64,000 nt of DNA from Octopus sinensis (lineage: Eukaryota). Made by a program: the position numbers and the translations under genes. The stretch spans positions 29,016,001 through 29,080,000 of the forward strand of contig NC_043016.1 of NCBI RefSeq assembly GCF_006345805.1, given 5' to 3'. Below, piece by piece: positions 1 to 56,003 of this stretch (position 1 is the stretch's first letter; every line of letters starts with the position of its first letter). The notes beneath the pieces were generated by a model. It did not search any database. It was not told where the DNA came from and worked only from the letters and a program-made list of their open reading frames with translations.

Positions 1-1929
1 CCACGTATATGCAGATATGCGAAAAGCCTCAAAAAATTCATTAATGTCAATGTTACCATCTTTATCAAAGTCCATAGTTTTCCCTATTTTAGCAATATCA
101 CCTTCTTTAAATATATGGCTGGTACATCTTTGAAGAATCATCATGCCATCCTTAAATTCTTGCATCGTAATTGCTCCAGAATTATCAACATCAAATGTTC
201 GAAATATAGTCTCCAAGATCTCTCTGTTAGCATACACAATGTCTGCGACTGGGTGTTTGGATGCCCTAGACAAATCCAATATCTTAAAAGTGTTTTCGTA
301 ATGCACCATGTTGTCGCTATCGACATCACAGATTCTGTTAATGATTAAACGCCATGGCACTTTCAGCTTCAGCACTGCACCCAAACATGTGCTGAAGTCT
401 TTGGCACTTACGGTTCCAGTTCCATCCTTATCGTATTGACTAAGTGCCTCTTTGAGCTCTGGAAGTTTCAAACTAATCATTTGCTTTATTTTACTGAATG
501 CGGAAATTTCCAACGAAATTATCTGATCTTTTATGTTCAAATTATTTAACGCATCTTCATTGCTGACAAACGGGATGATACTCAAATTTTTTTCGTCACC
601 ACGGTATATTACAAAAGCACCTTTATTGCTTCCTCGTTCGTAATAGTTGGATGCAGAGAAAATGGTTAACACTTGGTTGTCGTGTGTGTACTCGTAGCCA
701 TTCACTTTACATTCGTGAGATCTTATTAGAAGTACAAGATTGTTCTCCTCTAAGAAATTACTTGTAATATCAGGTCCAAAATATTTCCCACTTCCCCTAA
801 ATTCATTTTCAGTGCAACCCTTTTGGTTTGACGGATCACTCCAGAGAAGATCGAGCAAGTATCCCCAGCTACATTTCTCATTTACCTCAAAAAATGAACC
901 TGGTTTTATGACTGAAACAAATTTCGTTCTTGGAATTTGATTGATTTTCTTTAAATCTAACTCATCCGATATTCCTCCATGTACAACCAATATTTTATTA
1001 TCGATGATCGAACCCAATGGTAGATATTTAAATAGTATATTGAACATCTTGAGGAGTCTTTTTGCGTAAGTTCTAAATCTTAGAGTAATTTCTTTTATGA
1101 AACCATATCTCCTGTTTAAAATAGGATCTTCGTGGTTTCCTCTGTTCAAGAATACATGATTAGGAAACACCAAAATACAGTAAAATATAATCATGCACAC
1201 TTCAACACACTTGGGTCCTCTATCGACGATGTCTCCATTAAAAACATAAGGGTTTGTTGTAGAAGGAAGGTTATTTTTGTGAAATATGGTAAGTAGATCA
1301 TCCAAACTTCCATGTAAGTCTCCAATAATAGTCACCTTCTTGTTAACAGAAGTTGTTGTTATACGATACAAATTATTTCGAGATTTCAGTTTTAAAATCG
1401 TGTCCCTCAGTATTTGTGAAACATATGCAGCATGGATTATTTTGCCACATCTGAAATCATTGACCAGAATCTGCAATTTATTAGATGAATAAGGTAGTGT
1501 GATCACGATGCCAACATAATCGTTTGGAATAATTTGTGGAATTTCAAGATCTTTTATAGAAGTGTCTACATCGATGACTGAAGGACGTCCGGCGGCCTTG
1601 TTGATCAACCTTTGTTGAATAAAATCCACTTTTGCTGTGTCTTGGAATTCTTCGATCAAAACTTTAAACATTTTACTCAACTTTAATTGATGGTGTTCAC
1701 CGAAATATTCAATTTCTTGAAATACATTCCAGGCTATTTCTCTTCTGACTCTCAACTTACTCGACCAAACACGGAACCATTTCTGAATCAACAGCGCTGC
1801 TTTCACATCTGTTAGTTTCAGTAGCTCCGAATCCAATTCTTTCCGTTCCGGCTTAGTCCCACGTTTCAATTTGAAATGAGAGACGGCTGTCACCTTTCCT
1901 TCTATTAGTTTGGTACAGCAGCTGCCCAT
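1..1929 (-). CDS. PPEF: Intronless PPEF/rdgC-family Ser/Thr protein phosphatase with EF-hands; 3' end lies just beyond the window start
   Basis: Hand translation from ATG 1929 gives 643 codons with no stop down to base 1, and there is an in-frame upstream TGA. N-terminus MGSCCT; IQ-like AALLIQKWFR followed by VFQEIEYFGE; PPP motifs GDLHG, GDIVDRG, NRGNHE, HGGIS, LLWSDP, RSHECK; the PPEF-type FSASNYY; VPWR; EF-hand loops DKDGTGTVSAKDF, DVDNSGAITMQEF, DFDKDGNIDINEF; C-terminal NEFFEAFR. Absent from the ORF track because it has no stop inside the window. Confidence 0.95.
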   Translation of the reverse strand, partial: MGSCCTKLIEGKVTAVSHFKLKRGTKPERKELDSELLKLTDVKAALLIQKWFRVWSSKLRVRREIAWNVFQEIEYFGEHHQLKLSKMFKVLIEEFQDTAKVDFIQQRLINKAAGRPSVIDVDTSIKDLEIPQIIPNDYVGIVITLPYSSNKLQILVNDFRCGKIIHAAYVSQILRDTILKLKSRNNLYRITTTSVNKKVTIIGDLHGSLDDLLTIFHKNNLPSTTNPYVFNGDIVDRGPKCVEVCMIIFYCILVFPNHVFLNRGNHEDPILNRRYGFIKEITLRFRTYAKRLLKMFNILFKYLPLGSIIDNKILVVHGGISDELDLKKINQIPRTKFVSVIKPGSFFEVNEKCSWGYLLDLLWSDPSNQKGCTENEFRGSGKYFGPDITSNFLEENNLVLLIRSHECKVNGYEYTHDNQVLTIFSASNYYERGSNKGAFVIYRGDEKNLSIIPFVSNEDALNNLNIKDQIISLEISAFSKIKQMISLKLPELKEALSQYDKDGTGTVSAKDFSTCLGAVLKLKVPWRLIINRICDVDSDNMVHYENTFKILDLSRASKHPVADIVYANREILETIFRTFDVDNSGAITMQEFKDGMMILQRCTSHIFKEGDIAKIGKTMDFDKDGNIDINEFFEAFRISAYTW

Positions 1930-2189
1930 ATCAAACCTTAGAATTAAATTTCAAGGAAAATGTCCTGCAGTCTTATCATAGAACGATGGCGACATTAACT
2001 TATGTCTTCTTGAAATGTTCTTCCTCCAGCAACATCACTTAAACTAAAAAATGTCGTCCTTTACAATCTCTTAAAAACCTCTTCTGTCCTTGCGTGCATT
2101 TGATATGTAAACATTATATTATCAGTTTTGTTTAGGTAATATTACAGACAACAGAACACTTTCTACAGCATAAATGTCATTATTATGTG

Positions 2190-2580
2190 AGACTACACAC
2201 GCACACATATACATGCAAACTATATATTCATACACATACATCATTAGATATACACACATATATGTATATGTGTGTATGCATATATATATATATATGCATA
2301 CACACACACACACTTATGTATATGTAAATAAAAATATATAATAATAACGACGTTTTTGTATAGTGTTCAGGTGCACTATATGTGTGTTTGTGCTCATGTA
2401 AGAATATGTATCATTCTCTCTCTCTCACACACACACATATATGTACGTTTATGAGTATTTATTTATCTCTATACTATACGTATGTATATATGTATGCATA
2501 AGTCATGCAGTGTATATGCGTGTGTATGTATATAATATATATTATATTTATATATATATGTATGTATATGTATATGTATA

Positions 2581-2614
<34 letters not shown>

Positions 2615-2779
2615 TATATGTGTGTGTGTAATATATATGTATGCATATATATATATATGTATGCATATATATATATGTATAATATATATATATATTATTA
2701 TATATATGTGTGTGTACATATATACATACATACATATATTATATATGTATATATATATTGTTGAACCTGGCCATATATA

Positions 2780-2853
<74 letters not shown>

Positions 2854-2900
2854 ATATATATAATATGTATATATAGATATGTGCGTGCGTGTTAGTGGGG
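2190..2900. repeat. Compound (TA)n/(CA)n/(TG)n microsatellite field
   Basis: Directly visible; source of several YIYI/MCVC ORFs. Similar fields at 15720-15970, 26705-26860, 31370-31550, 34170-34270, 34750-34940, 55975-56410. Confidence 0.95.
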
Positions 2901-3599
2901 TGCACATACACGTATTAAGTGCGAATACTAATTAGAATAATGATGATAATGCTTGTTGATTATGATTAAAGAATGGAGGGCTGAAGAGAGCTTTTTTTCT
3001 TCTTTTCACTTGTTACTAATCAGGTTTACAATTTTCCATTAACACTGATGACCGCCCACAGATGTAGTGGTGGTGGTGGTGGTGGTGATGGTGGTGGTGA
3101 CGACTACGACGACGACGATGACGACGACGACGATGATGATAATCATAATGCGGATACATCCAAGTCAATGCTAATAACATGACTACTTAATTGTCTTAGA
3201 GACCTAGAGCTGATCCATGCCAAGTTTAAACTTATATGGAATCGTGGATGAAAGTGAAGTAAGCGGACTGTCCAGCCATAAATGATGGACAATGGAAGCT
3301 AGCTTGTGTCTTTGTGCGATGGGCAACAAAGGCTTTTGTTCTTGAAATACGATTCTAACAGTTACTAACTGACCGTTTCTCATCATCCAGGAGTCTGTAC
3401 TTGTTTTGCTCCCACCCACCACCTTTTTACCCCCCCCCCATCCCACCATTTTAAAAAAAAAACCAAAACAGTACATTCCTAACTTTTGGAGAGAAAGGCG
3501 ACGACGTCACTAAAAAGGTAGTTTTTTTCAGAACGTCAGCACATTTACAATGAAATAAACGATATTGTTTTCAAATTTTAGTTTCTATTCCATTTCCCA

Positions 3600-4180: not shown

Positions 4181-5430
4181 AAGGAAGTATAACTGGGAAG
4201 ATAGCTTTTGTATGTGGCAGATGCTCGAGTGCAATAAACACTGACAATGCGCAGAGAACAACTTCCGCCACATTCCAGGGAGAAAAACTACAAGTAGTTG
4301 ATTGCTTCCGTTACCTAGGTGACCAAGTCGGTAGTGGGGGAGGGTGCTCTGAAAGTATAGCTGCTAGAATAAGAATAGCTTTGGAAAAATTCAGAGAGAT
4401 CTTACCCCTGCTGGTGACAAAGGGCCTCTCGCTTAGAGTAAAAGGTAGGCTATATGGCGCATGTGTACGAACAGCCATGCTACGTGGCAGTGAAACATGG
4501 GCTGTGACTGCTGAGGACATGCGCAAGCTTGCAAGGAATGAAGCCAGTATGATCCGATGGATGTGTAATGTCAGTGTGCATACTCGACAGAGTGTAAGTA
4601 CCTTGAGAGAAAAGTTGGACCTAAGAAGCATGTTGCGAGAATGGATGAGGATAGCTATGTGAAAAAGTGCACACCCTTGCAATTGAGAGAACCTGTGGAA
4701 GAGGTAGACCCAGGTAGACCTGGGATGGAGTGGTGAAGCACAACCTTTGAACTTTAGGCCTCACCAAGGAAATGACTAGTGAATGAGACCTTTGGAAATA
4801 TGCTGTTCTTGAGAAGACCCAGCAAGCCAAATGAGACCATAACCTCATAGCCTGTGCCATGGGCGTAACCAGCTCACTTATGCGTACCTTTTCCTTCTTT
4901 GGATACTAAACTCTGCTTGCGAAGACCTGTTGAGGCAAGTGAAATCGAAATCAAAATCAAAGTGAAATTCAATGATGGGTATGAGCACCATCCAAGTGTG
5001 ATCATTGACAGAGCGGCTAACTGGTTTCCGTGCCAGTGGCACATAAAAGGCACCATTCGAGTGTGATCGTTACCAGCCTCGCCTTACTGGCACTTGTGCC
5101 CCATGCTAGTAGGGTGCTAAGAGCACCATCTGAACTTGATCGTTGCCAGAGCGGCTAACTGGCTTCCATGCTGGCGGCATGTAGGAGGCACCATTCGAGC
5201 GGGATCATCACCAGCATTGCCTTACTGGCCCCTGTGCTGGTGGCACGTAAAAAGCACCCACTACACTCTTGGAGTAGTTGGCGTTAGGAAGGGCATCCAG
5301 CTGTAGAAATTCTGCCAGATCAAGACTGGAGCCTGGTGCAGCCATCTGGTTCGCCAGCCCACAGTCAAACCGTCCAACGCATGCTAGCATAGAAAGTGGA
5401 TGTTAAACGATGATGATGATGATGATGATA
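4181..5430 (+). mobile_element. 5'-truncated RTE-clade LINE (ORF2 3' part, 3' UTR, (GAT)n tail)
   Basis: Translates FVCGRC...EKLQVVDCFRYLGDQVGSGGGCSESIAARIRIALEKFREILPLL...LRGSETWAV...RWMCNVS, then deletion/frameshift. Continues into the modular ggcacgtaaaaagcacc 3' UTR and ends gttaaacgatgatgatgat. Confidence 0.85.
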
Positions 5431-6458: not shown

Positions 6459-7656
6459 TTAGACCAGCATGGAGCATGGTAGAAAGAATACTAATGATAG
6501 GAGTGCTGTCAGCTGAGATCCTCTTGCTGCAGTTACCTACCACTCCCCAATTCTTTTACTATCTTCTCTCCACAAGTCTCCCTGCCCAAGATGCTTTCAC
6601 TCTTTTCTTACTATACTCTTCTCCCCACCCCCTTTTATGATATTCTCCTCTGACCTCTCTTTGTCTCATTGTTTTCACTACATTCACCCTCTCCTCTCTC
6701 TCTCTCTCTATTTCTACAGTAATTTCCAGCCCTTCTTTCTCTTACTCTTGCATACACACATTGCTGCAACACTTTCTCTCACCCCACCACTCTGTCTCTC
6801 TTTCTCTCACGATCTCTCTCCTCAGCCTCCCTAACTAGGGCATTTTGTTTACATTCATACTTTGTTCTTTCTCCTACCACCGCAGCCACCACCTCTTTGG
6901 TAGCCCCTCCTTCAGCTTCTCTTTCCATCACTGCTCTTGCTGCATTCATCCACTGCTCCCTTGACCTACCTCTTTTCTCTTATTGCACTTTCTCCCAGCT
7001 TATCCACTGCCTCAAAAACTCATCCCCACCACACTGTCTTTAACCTACCTCAATGCATCCCAAAGCCCACCTTCACTCAAGTGACCTCCTCTCCTGATTT
7101 CTTGCCACTCTCACCTATTTCTCTTTCATTTATGTTCCATTCCACCCATACCCTTATATAGGATGGCAAGGGATCCTCCTACTGATCTCACCTTTTCATC
7201 CTTACACCTTACCACTCCTTCTCTCATTAACCCCTGACACTAATTCCTTTCTCCTTTCCTCTTTCTTTACATACTACTCTCTTTCTCTCTCTCTCTATAT
7301 ATATATATGTATACACACACACACATATATGTAATATATGTATATACATACATACATACATATGCACATAAAAGTACCCACTACACTCTCGGAGTGGTTA
7401 GCATTAGGAAGGGCATCCAGCTGTAATAACTCTGCCAGATCAGTCAAATCGTCCAACCCATGGAAAGCGGATGTTAAACGATGATGATGATGATGATGGT
7501 GAAGATGATGATGATGATATATATATATATATATAGGGGAAAGTAAGAAAAATAAGCGAAAATGCACATTGGAAATCAAAAAAAGTAAAGGCTTTTTATG
7601 AAAAGTAACGAAAGACATGATATATACAATTAGATGAACTGAAGTAGGAATAAAAG

Positions 7657-7704
<48 letters not shown>

Positions 7705-7941
7705 TGTTTATACTCTTTTACTCTTGCCTCTCACAACTACAAACTGCTCCTCTTATAGTTTGTCTTTGTCATGAGCTCACTTAGCATCATCACACTCTCC
7801 CTTCTATTCCGAATTATAGGTACAATCTATCCAAGGTTACAGACATTAACATTTGCCTAAGACACTATGCAGTGGGATTGAACCCTGAACCTCGTAGTTA
7901 GGAAACATACTTCTTAACCCTTTCACTACCATTACCACATC

Positions 7942-13110: not shown

Positions 13111-15793
13111 CCATGACACCATCAGAGTTTTTTTTTACATGGAAAAGCACCAACACCAATGCTTTTTGCATGGTACCTTGGTTTTAGGATATCAAATCAG
13201 TTGTAGTGGGTGGGTCTTCTCAAGTACAGCAATGCACCACATAACTTGGTCCTCTTTCATTTCCTTTTAAGCATAAATAAGCCACTTTACAAGCCACTGA
13301 GGGAGCCTGTGATAAGACTAATTACACTGAATCAAATACCATCTTAAAGCATAATTTATGTGAGGATGTTTTGAGGAAAAACCACAAAGAATGGGCAAGA
13401 TTGAGTAAAAAGGGGAAAGATTGACATGGCCTAGTTGTGAGGATGTTGGACTCACAATCACAAAATTGTGGCTTTGGTTCCTGGACCAGACAGTGCAAGA
13501 CACTTCATTTTATGTTGCTCTGTGATTGCTTTGACATCTGACATGTGGAACACTTTGTAGTTGTTCAGGAAACATTGAGTTGATGGGAGGAGTGAGCTTA
13601 TATGCAGCACAAACATATGATCACTATAAACAAATCATCTGAGCAGGTTGTTCAGCAAGAATGCAGAATTCTCATCTGTCATTTACAACAAGAGAATTCA
13701 CCATAGTATATTTTATAGATTTAAAAATTTTGGCATTTGTGCCTGTGTGCAGGTGACACGTAACCCCCCCCCCCCAAAAAAAAAAACATGATTTTTCCAT
13801 GGCTGTTATCAGTACCGCCTGACTGGCCCTCATGCAGGTGGCACGTAAAAGCACCCACTACACTCTCAGAGTGGTTGGCGTTAGGAAGGGCATCCAACTG
13901 TAGAAACTTTGCCAGATCAAGATTGGAGTCTTGTGCAGCCATCTGGTTCGCCAGCCCTCAGTCAAATCATCCAATCCATGCTAGCATGGAAAGCGGATGT
14001 TAAACAATGATGATGATGATGACCCCTTGAATTTTTTGTAGGTTTTCAGGAATTCAACATGTTATTTCTATGTAGTTCCACCCATTTCAAACTTCAGATT
14101 TTAGAATTATCATTTTGTTACATCAGGCATGTTTCACTTACATTTCATTTAAAAAGGAAAAATAGTTTTTTTCTCTTTCACTGTTGAGTTTTCAGCAAAT
14201 GATGATCTCTGCTAACTTCTGTAGTTTCATTTTTGGTATCATAAAACGAATCATCACCAAATTGAATGTTTTTAAGTTGGACACATATTTATCATGGTAT
14301 CTTTACAGGATACATATTTAATTTTTGTCATTTCAGCAAACATTAGTAGGTTTATGTGCATGTGTGTGGTATCTGCATTGGTTAATTGGGCTGCAAATTA
14401 GTCTTGGCATTTTTCATTTCTAGGGCCCCATAGAAATCAAATTATTGGTAAATTTTTACTGTTACACCTTTTTGATGAGCTTTCAGAATAGTTATTACTA
14501 GACCTGTTGAGGCAAGTGAAAATCAAAATCAAAATCAAAATTGATCAACATCAATGGAAATTGTAGCTGTGATGCCGGTGGCACATAAGAGAACCATCCG
14601 AACGTGGCCGTTGCCAGCGTCGCCCCGACTGGCCTCCGTGCTGGTGGCACATAAAAAGCACCATCCGATCATGGCTGTTGCCAGCTTCGCCTGGCACCTG
14701 TGCCGGTGGCATGTAAAAAGCACCCACTACTCTCATGGAGTGGTTGGCATTAGGAAGAGCATCCAGCCGTAGAAACATTGCCAGATCAGACTGGGCCTGG
14801 TGCAGCCTTCTGGCTTCCCAGACCCCAGTTGAACCGTCCAACCCATGCCAGCATGGAAAGCGGACACTAAACGATGATGATGATGATGATCCAAAAGAGA
14901 AGGAAAAATGCCAAGAATTAGGTGGTGGTTTCTGCATGAAAAAATTCTTTGTCCTCCACCCCTAATTCTGTGTTCTTTTTTGGTAAATTTTTACTATTTC
15001 TTACTCATACACCTATTTCGTGAGGCAGATGTAATATCTTTTACTTATATATTATACCTGTTTCAGTCATTAGACTGTGGCCTTGGGGCATCGCCTTGAA
15101 TTTTTAGTTAAATGAATCAAAACCCAGTACTTATTTTTTAAAGCCTGATACTTATTCTATTGTCTCTTTTGCTGAACTGCTAAGTCACAGACATGTAAAT
15201 ACATCAACACTAATTGTCAAGTGGTGCTGGGAGACACATACACACACATAATGGGTTTCTTTCAGTTTCTGTCTACCAAATTCACTCACAGGTTTTAGTT
15301 GGCCTGAGGCTATAGTAGATGTTTACCCAAGGTGGCATGCAGGGGGACTGAACACAGCACCATGAGTTTGAGAAGCAAGCTTCTTACCCATACTGTGCCT
15401 ATAGTTAAAAATAGTTAAAGATGTTAAAGTAATTTCCATGCCAAAATGAAACAGAAGCACAGCATTTAACCATCTGTAGATATTATGCTAGTTGGTATTT
15501 TGAGACAATTTCTTTGGATTTATACAAGACAAAATTTTATTTTTTTAAACTTTTGCAAACTCCCCCCCCCCTTTATTTTTTCGAAACATCTTTTTGAATT
15601 TGTTTGTTATTTGTAAACTTGAGACAGTATGACTTATAAAAATTTTTTTTCAAAATTTAAAAATAATATCTGAAATGGAAAAAGGAAAACTTATGCTAAT
15701 TTTGTGCAACCATGTGACTTCCTTCATAGTGTATATATGTGTATGCATGTATGCATGTGTGTGTATATGTGTGTGTGTGTGCTTTTGTGAACA

Positions 15794-16369: not shown

Positions 16370-19300
16370 CTGTAACCAATTAGTGTAGCCATGCAGTATT
16401 TTCTGTCTTTCCTTGTCAGTCTTCCTGTTGCCAGCCGGAAAGGCTACCCAGGAACTTCTTTCTACTTCTCTTGGTCAGTTATCCTCTAACCAGCTGGTAA
16501 AAACCTTCCAGTATCTTTTCGTTCTCTCTTGGCCAGTTGTTCTGTAGCCAATAAGTAAATCATCCAGTATCTTCTCTCTTAATCAATATCCAGGTTTCTT
16601 CTTATACTAGCTGGTAAGGTCATCTAGTATCTTTTGCCTTTCTTTTGCTTAGACTTTTTGTAACCAGCTTCTTTTTCTCTCTCTCTTGGTCAGCCTTCCT
16701 TTAATTAGTTTGCAATCTTTCTATAACCAGCATCCAGTATCTTCCCTTCTTCTTTCTTGGTCAGTCATTCTGTAACCTGCTACTGAAGCATCTAGTATCT
16801 GGATCTGGATAAGAAGCCATCCAGTATCTTCTCTCTCTCTCCTGGTCAAACTTCCTGTAGCCAATAGGAAAATCATCCCTGTAACTTTTCTCTCACTCCC
16901 TCCCCATGTCAGTGCCTCTATGACCAGCTGGTTAGGCCATCCAGTATCTCCTGTCTTTTGGCCAGATTTTCTGTAACCAGTTTGTAAGACCATCCAATAA
17001 CTTCTTTCTCTCTCTCCTTTGGTCAGTTTTCCTGAAAAGAAGCTTGCAATATTATCCAGTATCTTCTGTCCCTTGGTCAGTCATTCTGTAGCTGACTGGT
17101 AAATCATCTAGTATCTTCTCTCTCTGTCCAGATCAGTGTCTCTATAACCAGCTGGTAAGGTCATTCACTATCACCCGCTTCTCTTTTTTTGGTCAGATTT
17201 TCTGGAGCCAGCTACTATGGTCATCCTGTGTCTGTCTTCTCTTTCTCTCTCGACCAGTTTTTCTGTAGCCAATTGGTAATTCATCCAGTATCTTCTCTCT
17301 TCATGCCTTCTAGCTCTTTCTCACTCTTGGTCAGTTATTTTGTTTCCAACTGGTAAGGCCATTGAGTATCTTCTCTCTTTCTCATAGCTGGTCTTCCTGT
17401 AGCCAATCAGTGATTGATTCAGTATCTTCTCTCTCACTCTTTCCAGATCAATTTTTTTGTAACCTGCTGTTAAGACCAACCAGTATCTCCCGTGTTTCTT
17501 TTGGTCAATTATACAATAGCCAGCTTGAAAGGCCATCCAGTGGCTTCTCTCTCTCCAGGTCAAACTTCCTGTAACTGCTGGTGAGGTTGTCCAGTATTTA
17601 CTCTCTCTAGGTCAGACTTCCTGTCATCAGTGGGTAAGGCCTCCCAATTTCTTCTCTCGCCAGTCAGTTTTCTTGTAACCAGCTGGTATGGCCATCCAGT
17701 ACCATCTCTTTCATTCCCTCCCATTATCTCTTGCTCATTCAGTCAGTTATTGTTACCAAATGGAAAGGCCATACAGTATCTTCTAGTTTTCTCTTGGTCA
17801 GTTATTTTGTTGCCAACCAGTAAGGCTGTCCAGTATCTCCCATCTCTTTTGGTCAGTTATTTTGTTGCCAGCTGGTAAGGTTATCCAGTATCTCCCATCT
17901 CTTTTGGTCAGATATTTTGTTGCCATCCACTAAGGCTATCCAGTATCTCCTGTCCCTTTTGGTCAGTTATTTTGTTGCCATCCACTAAGGCTATCCAGTA
18001 TCTCCCGTCTCTTTTGGTCAGATATTTTGTTGCCAGCTAGTAATGCTATCCAGTATCTCCTGTCTCTTTCGGTCAGATATTTTGCTGCCAGTCATTAAGG
18101 CTATCCAGTATCTCCTGTCACTTTTGGTCAGATATTTTGTTGCCAGCTAGTAATGCTATCCAGTATCTCCTGTCTCTTTCGGTCAGATATTTTGCTGCCA
18201 GTCATTAAGACTATCCAGTATCTCCTGTCTCTTTCGGTCAGATATTTGCTGCCAGTCATTAAGACTATCCAGTATCTCCTGTCTCTTTCGGTCAGATATT
18301 TTGCTGCCAGTCATTAAGACTATCCAGTATCTCCTGTCTCTTTCGGTCAGATATTTTGCTGCCAGTCATTAAGACTATCCAGTATCTCCTGTCTCTTTCG
18401 GTCAGATATTTTGCTGCCAGTCATTAAGACTATCCAGTATCTCCTGTCTCTTTCGGTCAGATATTTTGCTGCCAGTCATTAAGACTATCCAGTATCTCCT
18501 GTCTCTTTCGGTCAGATATTGCTGCCAGTCATTAAGACTATCCAGTATCTCCTGTCTCTTTCGGTCAGATATTTTGCTGCCAGTCATTAAGACTATCCAG
18601 TATCTCCTGTCTCTTTCGGTCAGATATTTTGCTGCCAGTCATTAAGACTATCCAGTATCTCCTGTCTCTTTCGGTCAGATATTTTGCTGCCAGTCATTAA
18701 GACTATCCAGTATCTCCTGTCTCTTTCGGTCAGATATTTTGCTGCCAGTCATTAAGACTATCCAGTATCTCCTGTCTCTTTCGGTCAGATATTTTGCTGC
18801 CAGTCATTAAGACTATCCAGTATCTCCTGTCTCTTTCGGTCAGATATTTTGCTGCCAGTCATTAAGACTATCCAGTATCTCCTGTCTCTTTCGGTCAGAT
18901 ATTTTGCTGCCAGTCATTAAGACTATCCAGTATCTCCTGTCTCTTTCGGTCAGATATTTTGCTGCCAGTCATTAAGGCTATCCAGTATCTCCTGTCTCTT
19001 TCGGTCAGATATTTTGCTGCCAGTCATTAAGGCTATCCAGTATCTCCTGTCTCTTTCGGTCAGATATTTTGCTGCCAGTCATTAAGGCTATCCAGTATCT
19101 CCTGTCTCTTTCGGTCAGATATTTTGCTGCCAGTCATTAAGGCTATCCAGTATCTCCTGTCTCTTTCGGTCAGATATTTTGCTGCCAGTCATTAAGGCTA
19201 TCCAGTATCTCCTGTCTCTTTCGGTCAGATATTTTGCTGCCAGTCATTAAGGCTATCCAGTATCTCCTGTCTCTTTCGGTCAGATATTTTGCTGCCAGTC

Positions 19301-22300
19301 ATTAAGGCTATCCAGTATCTCCTGTCTCTTTCGGTCAGATATTTTGCTGCCAGTCATTAAGGCTATCCAGTATCTCCTGTCTCTTTCGGTCAGATATTTT
19401 GCTGCCAGTCATTAAGACTATCCAGTATCTCCTGTCTCTTTCGGTCAGATATTTTGCTGCCAGTCATTAAGACTATCCAGTATCTCCTGTCTCTTTCGGT
19501 CAGATATTTTGCTGCCAGTCATTAAGACTATCCAGTATCTCCTGTCTCTTTCGGTCAGATATTTTGCTGCCAGTCATTAAGACTATCCAGTATCTCCTGT
19601 CTCTTTCGGTCAGATATTTTGCTGCCAGTCATTAAGACTATCCAGTATCTCCTGTCTCTTTCGGTCAGATATTTTGCTGCCAGTCATTAAGACTATCCAG
19701 TATCTCCTGTCTCTTTCGGTCAGATATTTTGCTGCCAGTCATTAAGGCTATCCAGTATCTCCTGTCTCTTTCGGTCAGATATTTTGCTGCCAGTCATTAA
19801 GGCTATCCAGTATCTCCTGTCTCTTTCGGTCAGATATTTTGCTGCCAGTCATTAAGGCTATCCAGTATCTCCTGTCTCTTTCGGTCAGATATTTTGCTGC
19901 CAGTCATTAAGGCTATCCAGTATCTCCTGTCTCTTTCGGTCAGATATTTTGCTGCCAGTCATTAAGGCTATCCAGTATCTCCTGTCTCTTTCGGTCAGAT
20001 ATTTTGCTGCCAGTCATTAAGGATATCCAGTATCTCCTGTCTCTTTCGGTCAGATATTTTGCTGCCAGTCATTAAGGCTATCCAGTATCTCCTGTCTCTT
20101 TCGGTCAGATATTTTGCTGCCAGTCATTAAGGCTATCCAGTATCTCCTGTCTCTTTCGGTCAGATATTTTGCTGCCAGTCATTAAGGCTATCCAGTATCT
20201 CCTGTCTCTTTCGGTCAGATATTTTGCTGCCAGTCATTAGGCTATCCAGTATCTCCTGTCTCTTTCGGTCAGATATTTTGCTGCCAGTCATTAAGGCTAT
20301 CCAGTATCTCCTGTCTCTTTCGGTCAGATATTTTGCTGCCAGTCATTAAGACTATCCAGTATCTCCTGTCTCTTTCGGTCAGATATTTTGCTGCCAGTCA
20401 TTAAGGCTATCCAGTATCTCCTGTCTCTTTCGGTCAGATATTTTCTGCCAGTCATTAAGACTATCCAGTATCTCCTGTCTCTTTCGGTCAGATATTTTGC
20501 TGCCAGTCATTAAGACTATCCAGTATCTCCTGTCTCTTTCGGTCAGATATTTTGCTGCCAGTCATTAAGACTATCCAGTATCTCCTGTCTCTTTCGGTCA
20601 GATATTTTGCTGCCAGTCATTAAGACTATCCAGTATCTCCTGTCTCTTTCGGTCAGATATTTTGCTGCCAGTCATTAAGACTATCCAGTATCTCCTGTCT
20701 CTTTCGGTCAGATATTTTGCTGCCAGTCATTAAGACTATCCAGTATCTCCTGTCTCTTTCGGTCAGATATTTTGCTGCCAGTCATTAAGACTATCCAGTA
20801 TCTCCTGTCTCTTTCGGTCAGATATTTTGCTGCCAGTCATTAAGACTATCCAGTATCTCCTGTCTCTTTCGGTCAGATATTTTGCTGCCAGTCATTAAGA
20901 CTATCCAGTATCTCCTGTCTCTTTCGGTCAGATATTTTGCTGCCAGTCATTAAGGCTATCCAGTATCTCCTGTCTCTTTCGGTCAGATATTTTGCTGCCA
21001 GTCATTAAGGCTATCCAGTATCTCCTGTCTCTTTCGGTCAGATATTTTGCTGCCAGTCATTAAGGCTATCCAGTATCTCTCCTGTCTCTTTCGGTCAGAT
21101 ATTTTGCTGCCAGTCATTAAGGCTATCCAGTATCTCCTGTCTCTTTCGGTCAGATATTTTGCTGCCAGTCATTAAGGCTATCCAGTATCTCCTGTCTCTT
21201 TCGGTCAGATATTTTGCTGCCAGTCATTAAGACTATCCAGTATCTCCTGTCTCTTTCGGTCAGATATTTTGCTGCCAGTCATTAAGACTATCCAGTATCT
21301 CCTGTCTCTTTCGGTCAGATATTTTGCTGCCAGTCATTAAGACTATCCAGTATCTCCTGTCTCTTTCGGTCAGATATTTTGCTGCCAGTCATTAAGACTA
21401 TCCAGTATCTCCTGTCTCTTTCGGTCAGATATTTTGCTGCCAGTCATTAAGACTATCCAGTATCTCCTGTCTCTTTCGGTCAGATATTTTGCTGCCAGTC
21501 ATTAAGACTATCCAGTATCTCCTGTCTCTTTCGGTCAGATATTTTGCTGCCAGTCATTAAGACTATCCAGTATCTCCTGTCTCTTTCGGTCAGATATTTT
21601 GCTGCCAGTCATTAAGGCTATCCAGTATCTCCTGTCTCTTTCGGTCAGATATTTTGCTGCCAGTCATTAAGGCTATCCAGTATCTCCTGTCTCTTTCGGT
21701 CAGATATTTGCTGCCAGTCATTAAGGCTATCCAGTATCTCCTGTCTCTTTCGGTCAGATATTTTGCTGCCAGTCATTAAGACTATCCAGTATCTCCTGTC
21801 TCTTTCGGTCAGATATTTTGCTGCCAGTCATTAAGGCTATCCAGTATCTCCTGTCTCTTTCGGTCAGATATTTTGCTGCCAGTCATTAAGGCTATCCAGT
21901 ATCTCCTGTCTCTTTCGGTCAGATATTTTGCTGCCAGTCATTAAGGCTATCCAGTATCTCCTGTCTCTTTCGGTCAGATATTTTGCTGCCAGTCATTAAG
22001 GCTATCCAGTATCTCCTGTCTCTTTCGGTCAGATATTTTGCTGCCAGTCATTAAGACTATCCAGTATCTCCTGTCTCTTTCGGTCAGATATTTTGCTGCC
22101 AGTCATTAAGACTATCCAGTATCTCCTGTCTCTTTCGGTCAGATATTTTGCTGCCAGTCATTAAGACTATCCAGTATCTCCTGTCTCTTTCGGTCAGATA
22201 TTTTGCTGCCAGTCATTAAGACTATCCAGTATCTCCTGTCTCTTTCGGTCAGATATTTTGCTGCCAGTCATTAAGACTATCCAGTATCTCCTGTCTCTTT

Positions 22301-23945
22301 CGGTCAGATATTTTGCTGCCAGTCATTAAGACTATCCAGTATCTCCTGTCTCTTTCGGTCAGATATTTTGCTGCCAGTCATTAAGGCTATCCAGTATCTC
22401 CTGTCTCTTTCGGTCAGATATTTTGCTGTCAGTCATTAAGGCTATCCAGTATCTCCTGTCTCTTTCGGTCAGATATTTTGCTGCCAGTCATTAAGGCTAT
22501 CCAGTATCTCCTGTCTCTTTCGGTCAGATATTTTGCTGCCAGTCATTAAGGCTATCCAGTATCTCCTGTCTCTTTCGGTCAGATATTTTGCTGCCAGTCA
22601 TTAAGACTATCCAGTATCTCCTGTCTCTTTCGGTCAGATATTTTGCTGCCAGTCATTAAGACTATCCAGTATCTCCTGTCTCTTTCGGTCAGATATTTTG
22701 CTGCCAGTCATTAAGGCTATCCAGTATCTCCTGTCTCTTTCGGTCAGATATTTTGCTGCCAGTCATTAAGACTATCCAGTATCTCCTGTCTCTTTCGGTC
22801 AGATATTTTGCTGCCAGTCATTAAGGCTATCCAGTATCTCCTGTCTCTTTCGGTCAGATATTTTGCTGCCAGTCATTAAGACTATCCAGTATCTCCTGTC
22901 TCTTTCGGTCAGATATTTTGCTGCCAGTCATTAAGACTATCCAGTATCTCCTGTCTCTTTCGGTCAGATATTTTGCTGCCAGTCATTAAGACTATCCAGT
23001 ATCTCCTGTCTCTTTCGGTCAGATATTTTGCTGCCAGTCATTAAGACTATCCAGTATCTCCTGTCTCTTTCGGTCAGATATTTTGTTGCCATCATTAAGG
23101 CTATCCAGTATCTCCTGTCTCTTTCGGTCAGATATTTTGCTGCCAGTCATTAAGACTATCCAGTATCTCCTGTCTCTTTCGGTCAGATATTTTGCTGCCA
23201 GTCATTAAGACTATCCAGTATCTCCTCTCTCTTTCGGTCAGATATTTTGCTGCCAGTCATTAAGACTATCCAGTATCTCCTGTCTCTTTCGGTCAGATAT
23301 TTTGCTGCCAGTCATTAAGACTATCCAGTATCTCCTGTCTCTTTCGGTCAGATATTTTGCTGCCAGTCATTAAGACTATCCAGTATCTCCTGTCTCTTTC
23401 GGTCAGATATTTTGCTGCCAGTCATTAAGACTATCCAGTATCTCCTGTCTCTTTCGGTCAGATATTTTGCTGCCAGTCATTAAGACTATCCAGTATCTCC
23501 TGTCTCTTTCGGTCAGATATTTTGCTGCCAGTCATTAAGACTATCCAGTATCTCCTGTCTCTTTCGGTCAGATATTTTGCTGCCAGTCATTAAGGCTATC
23601 CAGTATCTCCTGTCTCTTTCGGTCACATATTTTGTTGCCAGCAAATGAGGCTATCTAGTATCTCCCATTTCTTTTGGTCAAATATTTTGTTGCCAACCTG
23701 TAAGGTTATTCAGTATCTCCCATCTCTTTTGGTCAGTTATTTTGTTGCTAGCTGGTAAGGCTATCCAGTATCTTCTCACTTTTTATGGTCACTCTTTCTG
23801 TAACCAGCTGGCAATGCCAGCCAATATTGTCTCTCTCTCATAGTTGCTCTCTCTGATGCCAATTGGTAAGGCCATCCAGTATCTTTTCTCTCTCTCACTC
23901 CATGTCAGTATACTTGAAGCTAATTGGTAAAGCCATCAAGTACCT
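16370..23945. repeat. 55-bp tandem satellite: homogeneous core ~18180-23625 (~99 units) with diverged flanks
   Basis: Unit (a/g)ctatccagtatctcctgtctctttcggtcagatattttgctgccagtcattaag; register recurs every 660 bp (12 x 55). Flanks keep ccagtatct...ttggtcag...tgtaaccagctggtaagg at much lower identity. Confidence 0.97.
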
Positions 23946-30350: not shown

Positions 30351-55180
<24,830 letters not shown>

Positions 55181-56003
55181 CTGAAATAAAAAATATCAAA
55201 GACAATTAGTGATAAATATGGAAAAAAAGCAAAGAAACAAGAAGTTTCAAATTTATCACAAACTTTAAAAATCACATGGGAAATCTCCCTCCTCAGACAC
55301 ACACTCATGCATATTGAGATTTTCAATTACAATCTACAACCACAAAAATGAAAATATTTAATGATTAAAAAGTGAATAAAGAAAAACACATTTCTGATGA
55401 AATAAATAGTCATGAAAAATATCAGATTTACGAAACGTATAAGTTCATAAAATATGTAATTTGGTAATGTTAATGTTCATTTTTGCAAATACAAACACTT
55501 AAGCACACATATGGTTAAATAATAATAATAATAATAATAATAAATGATAAAGAACTTGATAAAAAAAAAAGAACAACAACTTGATTGAAATACTAAATCA
55601 CTGATTGCACAATTATCAGTTTTATTGTTTCTTTGCATCATGAAGTAATAATATTGATATAACTTGCTGATATAATAACTAATTTCTCAACATTCATAGA
55701 TTGAAGGTGGATTAATAAACATTATCAGATGATCTTAAAGAGTTAGTCAACCTTACAGCTTTAATGTGATCAATGGTTAATCTGACATTAGAATACAATT
55801 ACACACACACACACACACATACACACAGGGGCAGGCATGGCAGAGCAGTCGAAAAATCACTTCCCAACAACTGCATGACACCTTGGGCAAGTGTCTTCTA
55901 CTAAAGCTCTGGACCGACTAAAGCCTTGCGAGTAGATTTGGTAGACAAAAAAAATTAAAGAAGTCTGCCATATGTGTGTGTGTATATATAATATTAAACA
56001 CAA

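Follow-up and report, generated by a model that had tools for sequence, protein, structure and literature searches.

A single-exon, fast-evolving PPEF/rdgC phosphatase gene of octopods, probably an ancient retrogene whose multi-exon parent was lost

The window analyzed here was a 64,000-nucleotide stretch of the Octopus sinensis genome (contig NC_043016.1, positions 29,016,001 to 29,080,000), and the subject was the PPEF/rdgC-type protein phosphatase gene located at its very beginning. PPEF/rdgC genes of invertebrates are normally slow-evolving, single-copy, and intron-rich, and rdgC of flies prevents the light-dependent degeneration of photoreceptors. The reverse complement of window positions 1-1950 contained 650 stop-free codons, and the PPEF coding sequence (CDS) within it started with ATG at 1929-1927 and ran on the minus strand for 643 codons to base 1; a random open frame of 650 codons at the window composition (31% A, 32% T) had P ~5e-20. 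The 643 uninterrupted codons given for 1-1929 in the original prediction, which left the strand unstated, were thereby confirmed, while a plus-strand reading of 1-1929 was ruled out, frame +1 being full of stops. The gene called in GCA_006345805.1 (chromosome CM016878.1, identical to the window at all 11,929 bases compared) was 1932 nt in length (643 codons plus TAA), and therefore TAA lay directly left of window base 1 and the PPEF protein was complete; this protein was identical to P0001 in the database protein search. The gene had been described as hidden, but a gene call for it was present in each of the four assemblies inspected, namely those of three Octopus species and of Argonauta hians, with the O. 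bimaculoides copy named PPEF 2. The gene and its inner components were as follows (window coordinates, strand, feature, and basis of assignment):

1..1929, minus strand: complete CDS of octopus PPEF/rdgC phosphatase, contained in a single exon (frame, gene call, and RDGC match)
1909..1929, minus strand: N-terminal MGSCCTK (Gly2, Cys4/5, Thr6), candidate N-myristoylation/palmitoylation membrane anchor (sequence)
1645..1806, minus strand: extended IQ motif (residues 42-95), comprising the auto-inhibitory lid and the part that binds calmodulin (alignment to RDGC 6-59)
580..1479, minus strand: PPP-family catalytic domain, residues ~151-450, with all metal-/phosphate-binding motifs (Pfam, motifs, and AlphaFold2 [AF2] model)
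250..534, minus strand: EF-like domain, residues ~466-560, including the degenerate loop DKDGTGTVSAKD (500-511) (RDGC alignment; helical in the model)
1..234, minus strand: pair of EF-hands at the C-terminus (residues 566-643), both Ca2+ loops being canonical (Pfam EF-hand_7 and loops)

The catalytic domain displayed the PPP motifs GDLHG (residues 203-207), GDIVDRG (232-238), RGNHE (263-267), VHGG (316-319), FRGSG (377-381), RSHE (403-406), and SASNYY (425-430), and the two EF-hand loops DVDNSGAITMQE (580-591) and DFDKDGNIDINE (620-631) had canonical ligand positions; together with the Pfam assignments Metallophos (calcineurin-like phosphoesterase; residues 198-407, E 1e-26) and EF-hand_7 (residues 572-637, E 5e-15), this bore out the earlier claim that every PPP motif and the EF-hands were intact. 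The top solved-structure match was Drosophila RDGC (8jfw_D, E 1e-137), collinear over residues 42-639, while PP5, calcineurin, PP1, and PP2A gave far weaker structure-database matches. The AF2 model, built on a 35-sequence alignment, had a mean predicted local distance difference test score of 77.7 (>90 across most of the catalytic domain). In the fold search with this model, the best PDB matches were 8jfy_C and 8jfw_D (RDGC/calmodulin; E ~1e-45, ~620 columns), with a global template-modeling (TM) score of only ~0.5 since domain packing differed or was uncertain; the catalytic domain superposed on PP5c with TM ~0.9. By these sequence and fold criteria, the octopus protein is a bona fide PPEF.

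Octopus PPEF and RDGC (8jfw and 8jfy) shared the domain order extended IQ motif, PPP catalytic domain, EF-like domain, and EF-hand pair, but they had only ~36-40% identity. The IQ/lid residues were mapped by alignment to RDGC and read against the cryo-EM paper PMC11962071, with LLIQKWFRVW at residues 46-55 recognized as the IQ motif core: (i) residues kept (RDGC/octopus) were I12/I48, K14/K50, W15/W51, R17/R53, W31/W67, F34/F70, Y39/Y75, E42/E78, L48/L84, F52/F88, L55/L91, and I56/I92; (ii) conservative changes were I6 to V42, I10 to L46, F11 to L47, and Y16 to F52; and (iii) three interface residues were altered, namely R18 to V54, Y49 to S85, and N53 to K89. The octopus EF-hand loops matched the RDGC Ca2+-binding residues D539, D541, and E550 plus N581 and D583. 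As for the N-terminus, all seven members of the intronless clade (see below) started with MG(S/I)C, MGC was the consensus of canonical PPEFs, and MGSCCTK had the Gly2/Cys/Thr6 pattern of dually acylated PPEFs and is thus a candidate acylation site. PMC6161916 describes RDGC-M/L as fatty-acylated and RDGC as having three N-terminal isoforms, whereas the octopus single-exon CDS had one acylatable N-terminus.

The octopus protein would thus be a membrane-anchored Ser/Thr phosphatase, and, by homology, RDGC-type dual Ca2+-sensor activation is most likely its working mode: at low Ca2+, apo-calmodulin and the C-terminal EF-like/EF-hand tandem would hold the extended IQ motif over the active site, and upon a Ca2+ rise both sensors would draw the lid off, rendering the enzyme active. 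In a rhabdomeric photoreceptor of the Gq/phospholipase C type, light-phosphorylated rhodopsin and transient receptor potential (TRP)-type channels would be the expected substrates. Vertebrate PPEF1 and PPEF2 belonged to the same family, and the O. bimaculoides ortholog (RefSeq XP_052829659.1, which shared a 90% cluster with the octopus protein) bears the RefSeq name PPEF 2. The grouping of bird PPEF1 with mammal PPEF2 in the tree identified the PPEF 1/2 split as a vertebrate duplication; judged from the tree, the octopus gene is co-orthologous to PPEF1 plus PPEF2 rather than a PPEF2 ortholog.

The sequence comparison was applied to the octopus gene together with its relatives in cephalopods and other molluscs. 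Gene span and CDS were of equal length in O. sinensis, O. vulgaris (one synonymous base different from O. sinensis), O. bimaculoides, Argonauta hians (632 aa, 59% identity to the O. sinensis protein), and P0004 (48% identity, on a 32.7-kb genomic contig), and the CDSs of P0002 (octopod, 78% identity), P0005, and P0006 were uninterrupted on their contigs. In contrast, the canonical mollusc PPEFs, which had the same family membership and architecture and were the best database matches beyond the cephalopod clade, were large multi-exon genes:

Haliotis rubra (abalone): 34.5-kb span, 14 coding exons
Argopecten irradians (scallop): 39.8-kb span, 14 coding exons
Liolophura sinensis (chiton): 20.2-kb span, at least 11 coding exons recovered

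These canonical mollusc PPEFs were 51-63% identical among themselves, whereas they had ~42% identity to the octopus protein. About 13 intron positions were common to abalone, scallop, and chiton, corresponding to octopus residues ~40, 83, 114, 163, 218, 280, 337, 357, 419, 469, 504, 556, and 585, and all of them fell inside the one octopus exon. Because chiton, gastropod, and bivalve shared these positions, the PPEF introns were already present in the ancestor of molluscs, and the intronless state of the cephalopod clade was derived. The fly rdgC gene, according to the original prediction, is multi-exon as well. The joint disappearance of ~13 introns is classically taken as the mark of an mRNA intermediate, and the mRNA-derived origin proposed in the original prediction accordingly appeared natural when no coding introns were set against 14 exons in abalone and scallop and at least 11 in chiton, over 20-40 kb.

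This pattern is the core of the account favored here, namely that octopus PPEF is probably an ancient retrogene: a processed copy of the ~14-exon mollusc gene would have taken over and the intron-containing parent would have been lost (retrogene replacement). The same end state, a single-copy intronless ortholog, would also be reached if all introns were lost in place, by cDNA recombination at the ancestral locus or by serial loss, with no relocation and no parent at all, and the conserved 250 nt upstream of ATG (see below) could then be the original promoter. Loss of ~13 introns at once is rarely reached by the serial route, and no flank similarity was found between chiton/scallop and cephalopods, although the latter observation is weak, covering ±10 kb only: tblastx of the chiton and scallop ±10-kb flanks against the flanks of octopus, Argonauta, and contig L004 gave two marginal matches (E ~1e-6), none collinear, with the flanks being short. 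Loss in place is therefore considered unlikely. Beside the scallop A. irradians PPEF, a cyclin gene was recognized (L011 55878-59843; Cyclin_N2, Cyclin_N, and Cyclin_C); it could mark the ancestral PPEF locus in synteny comparisons, and no cyclin was seen in the 64-kb octopus window.

A parent or second copy was looked for at two levels. At the protein level, 12 canonical mollusc PPEFs were combined into a profile, and 5.8 billion proteins were screened with it. This collection contained entries named as O. bimaculoides and Argonauta hians as well as gene calls from the assemblies of O. sinensis and O. vulgaris, and no cephalopod protein was found among the best 120 matches (at least 889 bits), which covered molluscs, annelids, nemerteans, brachiopods, echinoderms, arthropods, cnidarians, placozoans, and vertebrates; the unlabeled matches checked all grouped with non-cephalopods (oyster, venerid clam, brachiopod, coral, tick, and others). 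Searches with the octopus protein and with P0004 gave no clade members beyond those named here. At the DNA level, tblastn of abalone PPEF against the 64-kb window and 10 kb beyond its start gave a single match and no tandem copies, contrary to the suggestion that tandem intronless copies might lie past the window start. The intronless gene thus appears, from these searches, to be the sole PPEF of octopods. In the original prediction, a sole PPEF with equally intronless molluscan orthologs was named as the outcome that would speak against retroposition; the first half of it seemingly held, while the second did not, the orthologs of non-cephalopod molluscs being intron-rich.

The searches bear on whether the gene is instead an extra retro-paralog, in which case an intron-containing canonical PPEF would survive elsewhere in the genome and the copy would have a new or tissue-restricted role, for example in testis. 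The gene was intronless and fast (dN/dS, the ratio of nonsynonymous to synonymous substitution rates, was 0.6-0.8 within Octopus; see below), as is common in young or specialized retrogenes, and the absence of the parent was read from annotated or predicted proteins; however, no cephalopod protein reached 889 bits against the canonical profile even though cephalopods were included in the collection, the copy was old and common to Octopus, Argonauta, and the sister clade P0004-P0006, and the O. bimaculoides copy was the very one named PPEF 2 in RefSeq. An extra copy beside a surviving parent is accordingly regarded as improbable. The original prediction of a paralog with an intron-containing parent, or of a lineage-private extra copy, thus gave way to that of a cephalopod PPEF ortholog.

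Two observations concerned the sister clade itself. Contigs L004 (10001-11971) and L009 (1951-3873), both from ENA sample ERZ21867824, carried two different intronless PPEF genes that were 70% identical (dS 0.64), and their similarity extended only ~180 nt upstream of the true ATG and ended at the stop codon; they represented either another duplication, of mRNA size, within the sister lineage or two species present in one sample. Moreover, the annotated start of P0004 was probably 29 codons too far upstream.

In the neighbor-joining (NJ) tree, the seven intronless sequences composed one clade with 100% bootstrap, which split into an octopod group (Octopus, P0002, and Argonauta) and a second group (P0004-P0006). 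The clade had a long branch and was placed basally, outside all bilaterian canonical PPEFs, at ~1.0-1.15 substitutions/site from any canonical PPEF versus 0.55-0.8 among canonical PPEFs; the gene tree that had been proposed as a check therefore recovered the intronless clade but did not nest it within Mollusca. Group-diagnostic columns and mean distances carried no signal for placement within Mollusca. The intronless clade retained 88-91% of the 115 columns invariant in 27 canonical animal PPEFs, versus 93-100% in leave-one-out controls, and ~10% of the invariant residues were thus changed in the cephalopod clade. Overall, the evolutionary rate of the protein was roughly double that of other animal PPEFs.

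Taken at face value, the basal placement and the nearly equal distances to every phylum would fit an ancient divergent PPEF paralog that predated molluscs and was kept only in cephalopods, which lost the canonical gene. The basal position is, however, what a long branch would give (long-branch attraction), no such paralog was seen in other animals among thousands of matches, the best non-clade matches of the octopus protein and of P0004 were molluscs, and many independent losses would be required; a pre-molluscan paralog is hence held to be very unlikely.

The dN/dS values, calculated by the Nei-Gojobori method, varied greatly with the pair compared (bootstrap 95% intervals in parentheses):

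O. sinensis versus O. bimaculoides: 0.82 (0.53-1.37)
O. sinensis versus P0002: 0.59 (0.45-0.77)
O. sinensis versus Argonauta: 0.26 (0.19-0.35), with synonymous sites near saturation
within the P0004-P0006 group: 0.20-0.30 (0.14-0.37 across two pairs tested)

The value for O. bimaculoides, with an interval including 1, is what would be expected of a processed pseudogene drifting neutrally and open by chance, and the remaining comparisons contradicted this. Between O. sinensis and O. bimaculoides, substitutions affected 7.4% of the flanks, where 97 indel events were counted over 7366 bp, whereas the CDS had 4.66% substitutions and one in-frame indel versus 25 expected (P 2e-10), with no stop codons; when the 90 observed substitutions were randomly placed, the frame stayed open in only 3.6% of simulations. 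The reading frame was intact in eight sequences with synonymous divergence >1. Amino acid differences between these two species were rarer at sites that canonical PPEFs conserve (7 of 241) than at variable sites (57 of 402; Fisher P 1e-6). At the conserved positions dN/dS was 0.20-0.24, while at the remaining positions it was 1.39 (0.89-3.22) versus O. bimaculoides and 0.81 versus P0002; the EF-like region at residues 451-565 was the fastest-evolving part within Octopus (dN/dS 1.26). The dN/dS check put forward in the original prediction thus gave low values at conserved positions and an overall value compatible with 1. The upstream region was conserved as well (see below). With so few indels, no stops, and replacements that avoid conserved sites, a pseudogene is effectively refuted and has hardly any probability left; these results agreed with the earlier view of a functional copy. 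By these sequence criteria, the gene is clearly maintained by selection, functional, and not decaying, and the protein is composed of a constrained catalytic/regulatory core within a shell that is nearly free to change, with positive selection on shell positions being possible.

The region 5' of the gene contained two further features:

1930..2190, minus strand: conserved 5' proximal region, candidate 5' untranslated region (UTR)/core promoter (cross-octopod conservation)
2210..2930, no strand assigned: AT/GT-rich microsatellite block bounding the conserved upstream region (sequence; equal to L001 9000-9720)

Over ~250 nt upstream of ATG, the mean column identity among O. sinensis, O. vulgaris, O. 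bimaculoides, and the 78%-identical species was 92%, and across these four octopod sequences this segment was more conserved than the CDS, including its synonymous sites; collinearity between the contig of the 78%-identical species and the genome started 298 nt upstream of ATG. Such conservation suggests that the 250-nt region is a functional promoter or 5' UTR. The microsatellite block was the source of the low-complexity open reading frames (ORFs) there. Contig L005 was considered as a transcript and set aside as expression evidence, as it had no poly(A) end and was collinear with the genome.

The favored history of octopus PPEF can be laid out as follows. A processed mRNA-derived copy of the ancestral ~14-exon molluscan PPEF gene would have arisen before the split of Octopodidae, Argonauta, and the sister lineage (probably decapodiforms); the copy would have gained a working promoter and the intron-containing parent would have been lost; and thereafter the protein would have evolved at ~2x the rate of other animal PPEFs, under purifying selection on the catalytic/regulatory core and with the remaining ~60% of positions almost free. 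The event predates the Octopus-Argonauta split, and, if P0004-P0006 are decapodiform, it predates the octopodiform-decapodiform split too.

Several points weigh against this history: (i) the protein tree failed to place the clade inside Mollusca, the clade being about equidistant from all animal PPEFs; (ii) the dN/dS of the two closest informative species was not significantly below 1 (interval as given above); (iii) no poly(A) tract was found in 1 kb past the stop, where an AATAAA-like signal ~100 nt downstream and microsatellites were present; (iv) no flanking target-site duplications were found, with only microsatellite direct repeats flanking the gene; (v) the loss of the parent was read from annotation-derived protein databases, and an unannotated or very divergent second PPEF may exist; and (vi) the age of the event is uncertain, hinging on the taxon of the sister clade P0004-P0006. 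As the event would be old, missing retroposition scars are expected, and the mechanism was deduced solely from intron absence. Retroposition plus parent loss is the best-supported account, and the same data fit in-place cDNA recombination.

A comparable case is amphioxus SYCP1 (PMC5803294, where retrogene replacement is defined by a single-exon retrocopy keeping the function and the multi-exon parent being lost); in octopus, by comparison, relocation and parent loss were deduced from protein databases, and no poly(A) or target-site duplication scars were present. A substantial PPP gene family expansion in Drosophila is described in PMC3137614, the text of which contains the word "retrogene" 35 times; there, the Drosophila PPP genes add to an indispensable core set, while the octopus gene is apparently the sole PPEF.

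The remainder of the window contained repeats and fragmentary ORFs. A reverse transcriptase (RT)-like ORF fragment of long interspersed nuclear element (LINE) type was located at 4183-4659 on the plus strand, antisense to PPEF and ~2.3 kb upstream of ATG, and Argonauta had a 55% identical RT fragment (L003 8214-8459) in the same relative place and orientation; the two were probably independent insertions of a common LINE family, and they may instead represent an old shared insertion. Positions 17796-23773 were occupied by a 6-kb minisatellite (55-bp unit, 108.8 copies, 97% matches), which accounted for the strong AT and GC skew at 16-24 kb. Copies of a short interspersed nuclear element (SINE)-like interspersed repeat were found at 7298-7717, 14554-14961, 33496-33777, 41769-42188, and 48751-49137, with the translation "...LDALPNANHS..VVGAFY.PPA..PGEAG...". 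Two exon-like ORFs, 30354-31163 and 54936-55205 (both on the minus strand), lay 24 kb apart with repeats between them, one being Ser/Thr-rich and ending in a stop and the other coiled-coil-like; they probably belonged to a neighboring large-intron gene. The neighbor with multi-kb, repeat-filled introns in the original prediction would probably correspond to this layout. Pfam gave no significant family for these exon-like ORFs or for the RT-like ORF. ARAGORN detected no tRNA genes in the window.

The literature searched contained nothing specific on a cephalopod PPEF/rdgC or on a PPEF retrogene, and an intronless, apparently sole, and strongly accelerated cephalopod PPEF ortholog seems to be unreported there; the gene itself is already annotated, it belongs to the known PPEF/rdgC family, and no new mechanism, family, or system is involved. 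As a speculative extension with a low chance of being right as a whole, the rhodopsin/TRP phosphatase might have been replaced by a retrocopy under new regulation on the coleoid stem, the roughly twofold acceleration and the near-neutral or positive evolution at ~60% of sites reflecting adaptive retuning, be it for photoreception in the camera eye or the skin or for a move into a different tissue, in which case cephalopod rhodopsin would be dephosphorylated by another enzyme, with P0004 and P0006 (one sample) representing a further retro-duplication. If the retrogene origin is true, the gene would cleanly illustrate how retrogene replacement can affect a core sensory-signaling gene; the loss of ~13 introns at once would be a rare genomic change that could date or polarize cephalopod lineages once Nautilus and Vampyroteuthis are checked; and caution would be called for in carrying fly RDGC function over to cephalopod photoreceptors. 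The relevance to cephalopod vision and to gene-structure evolution would be moderate.

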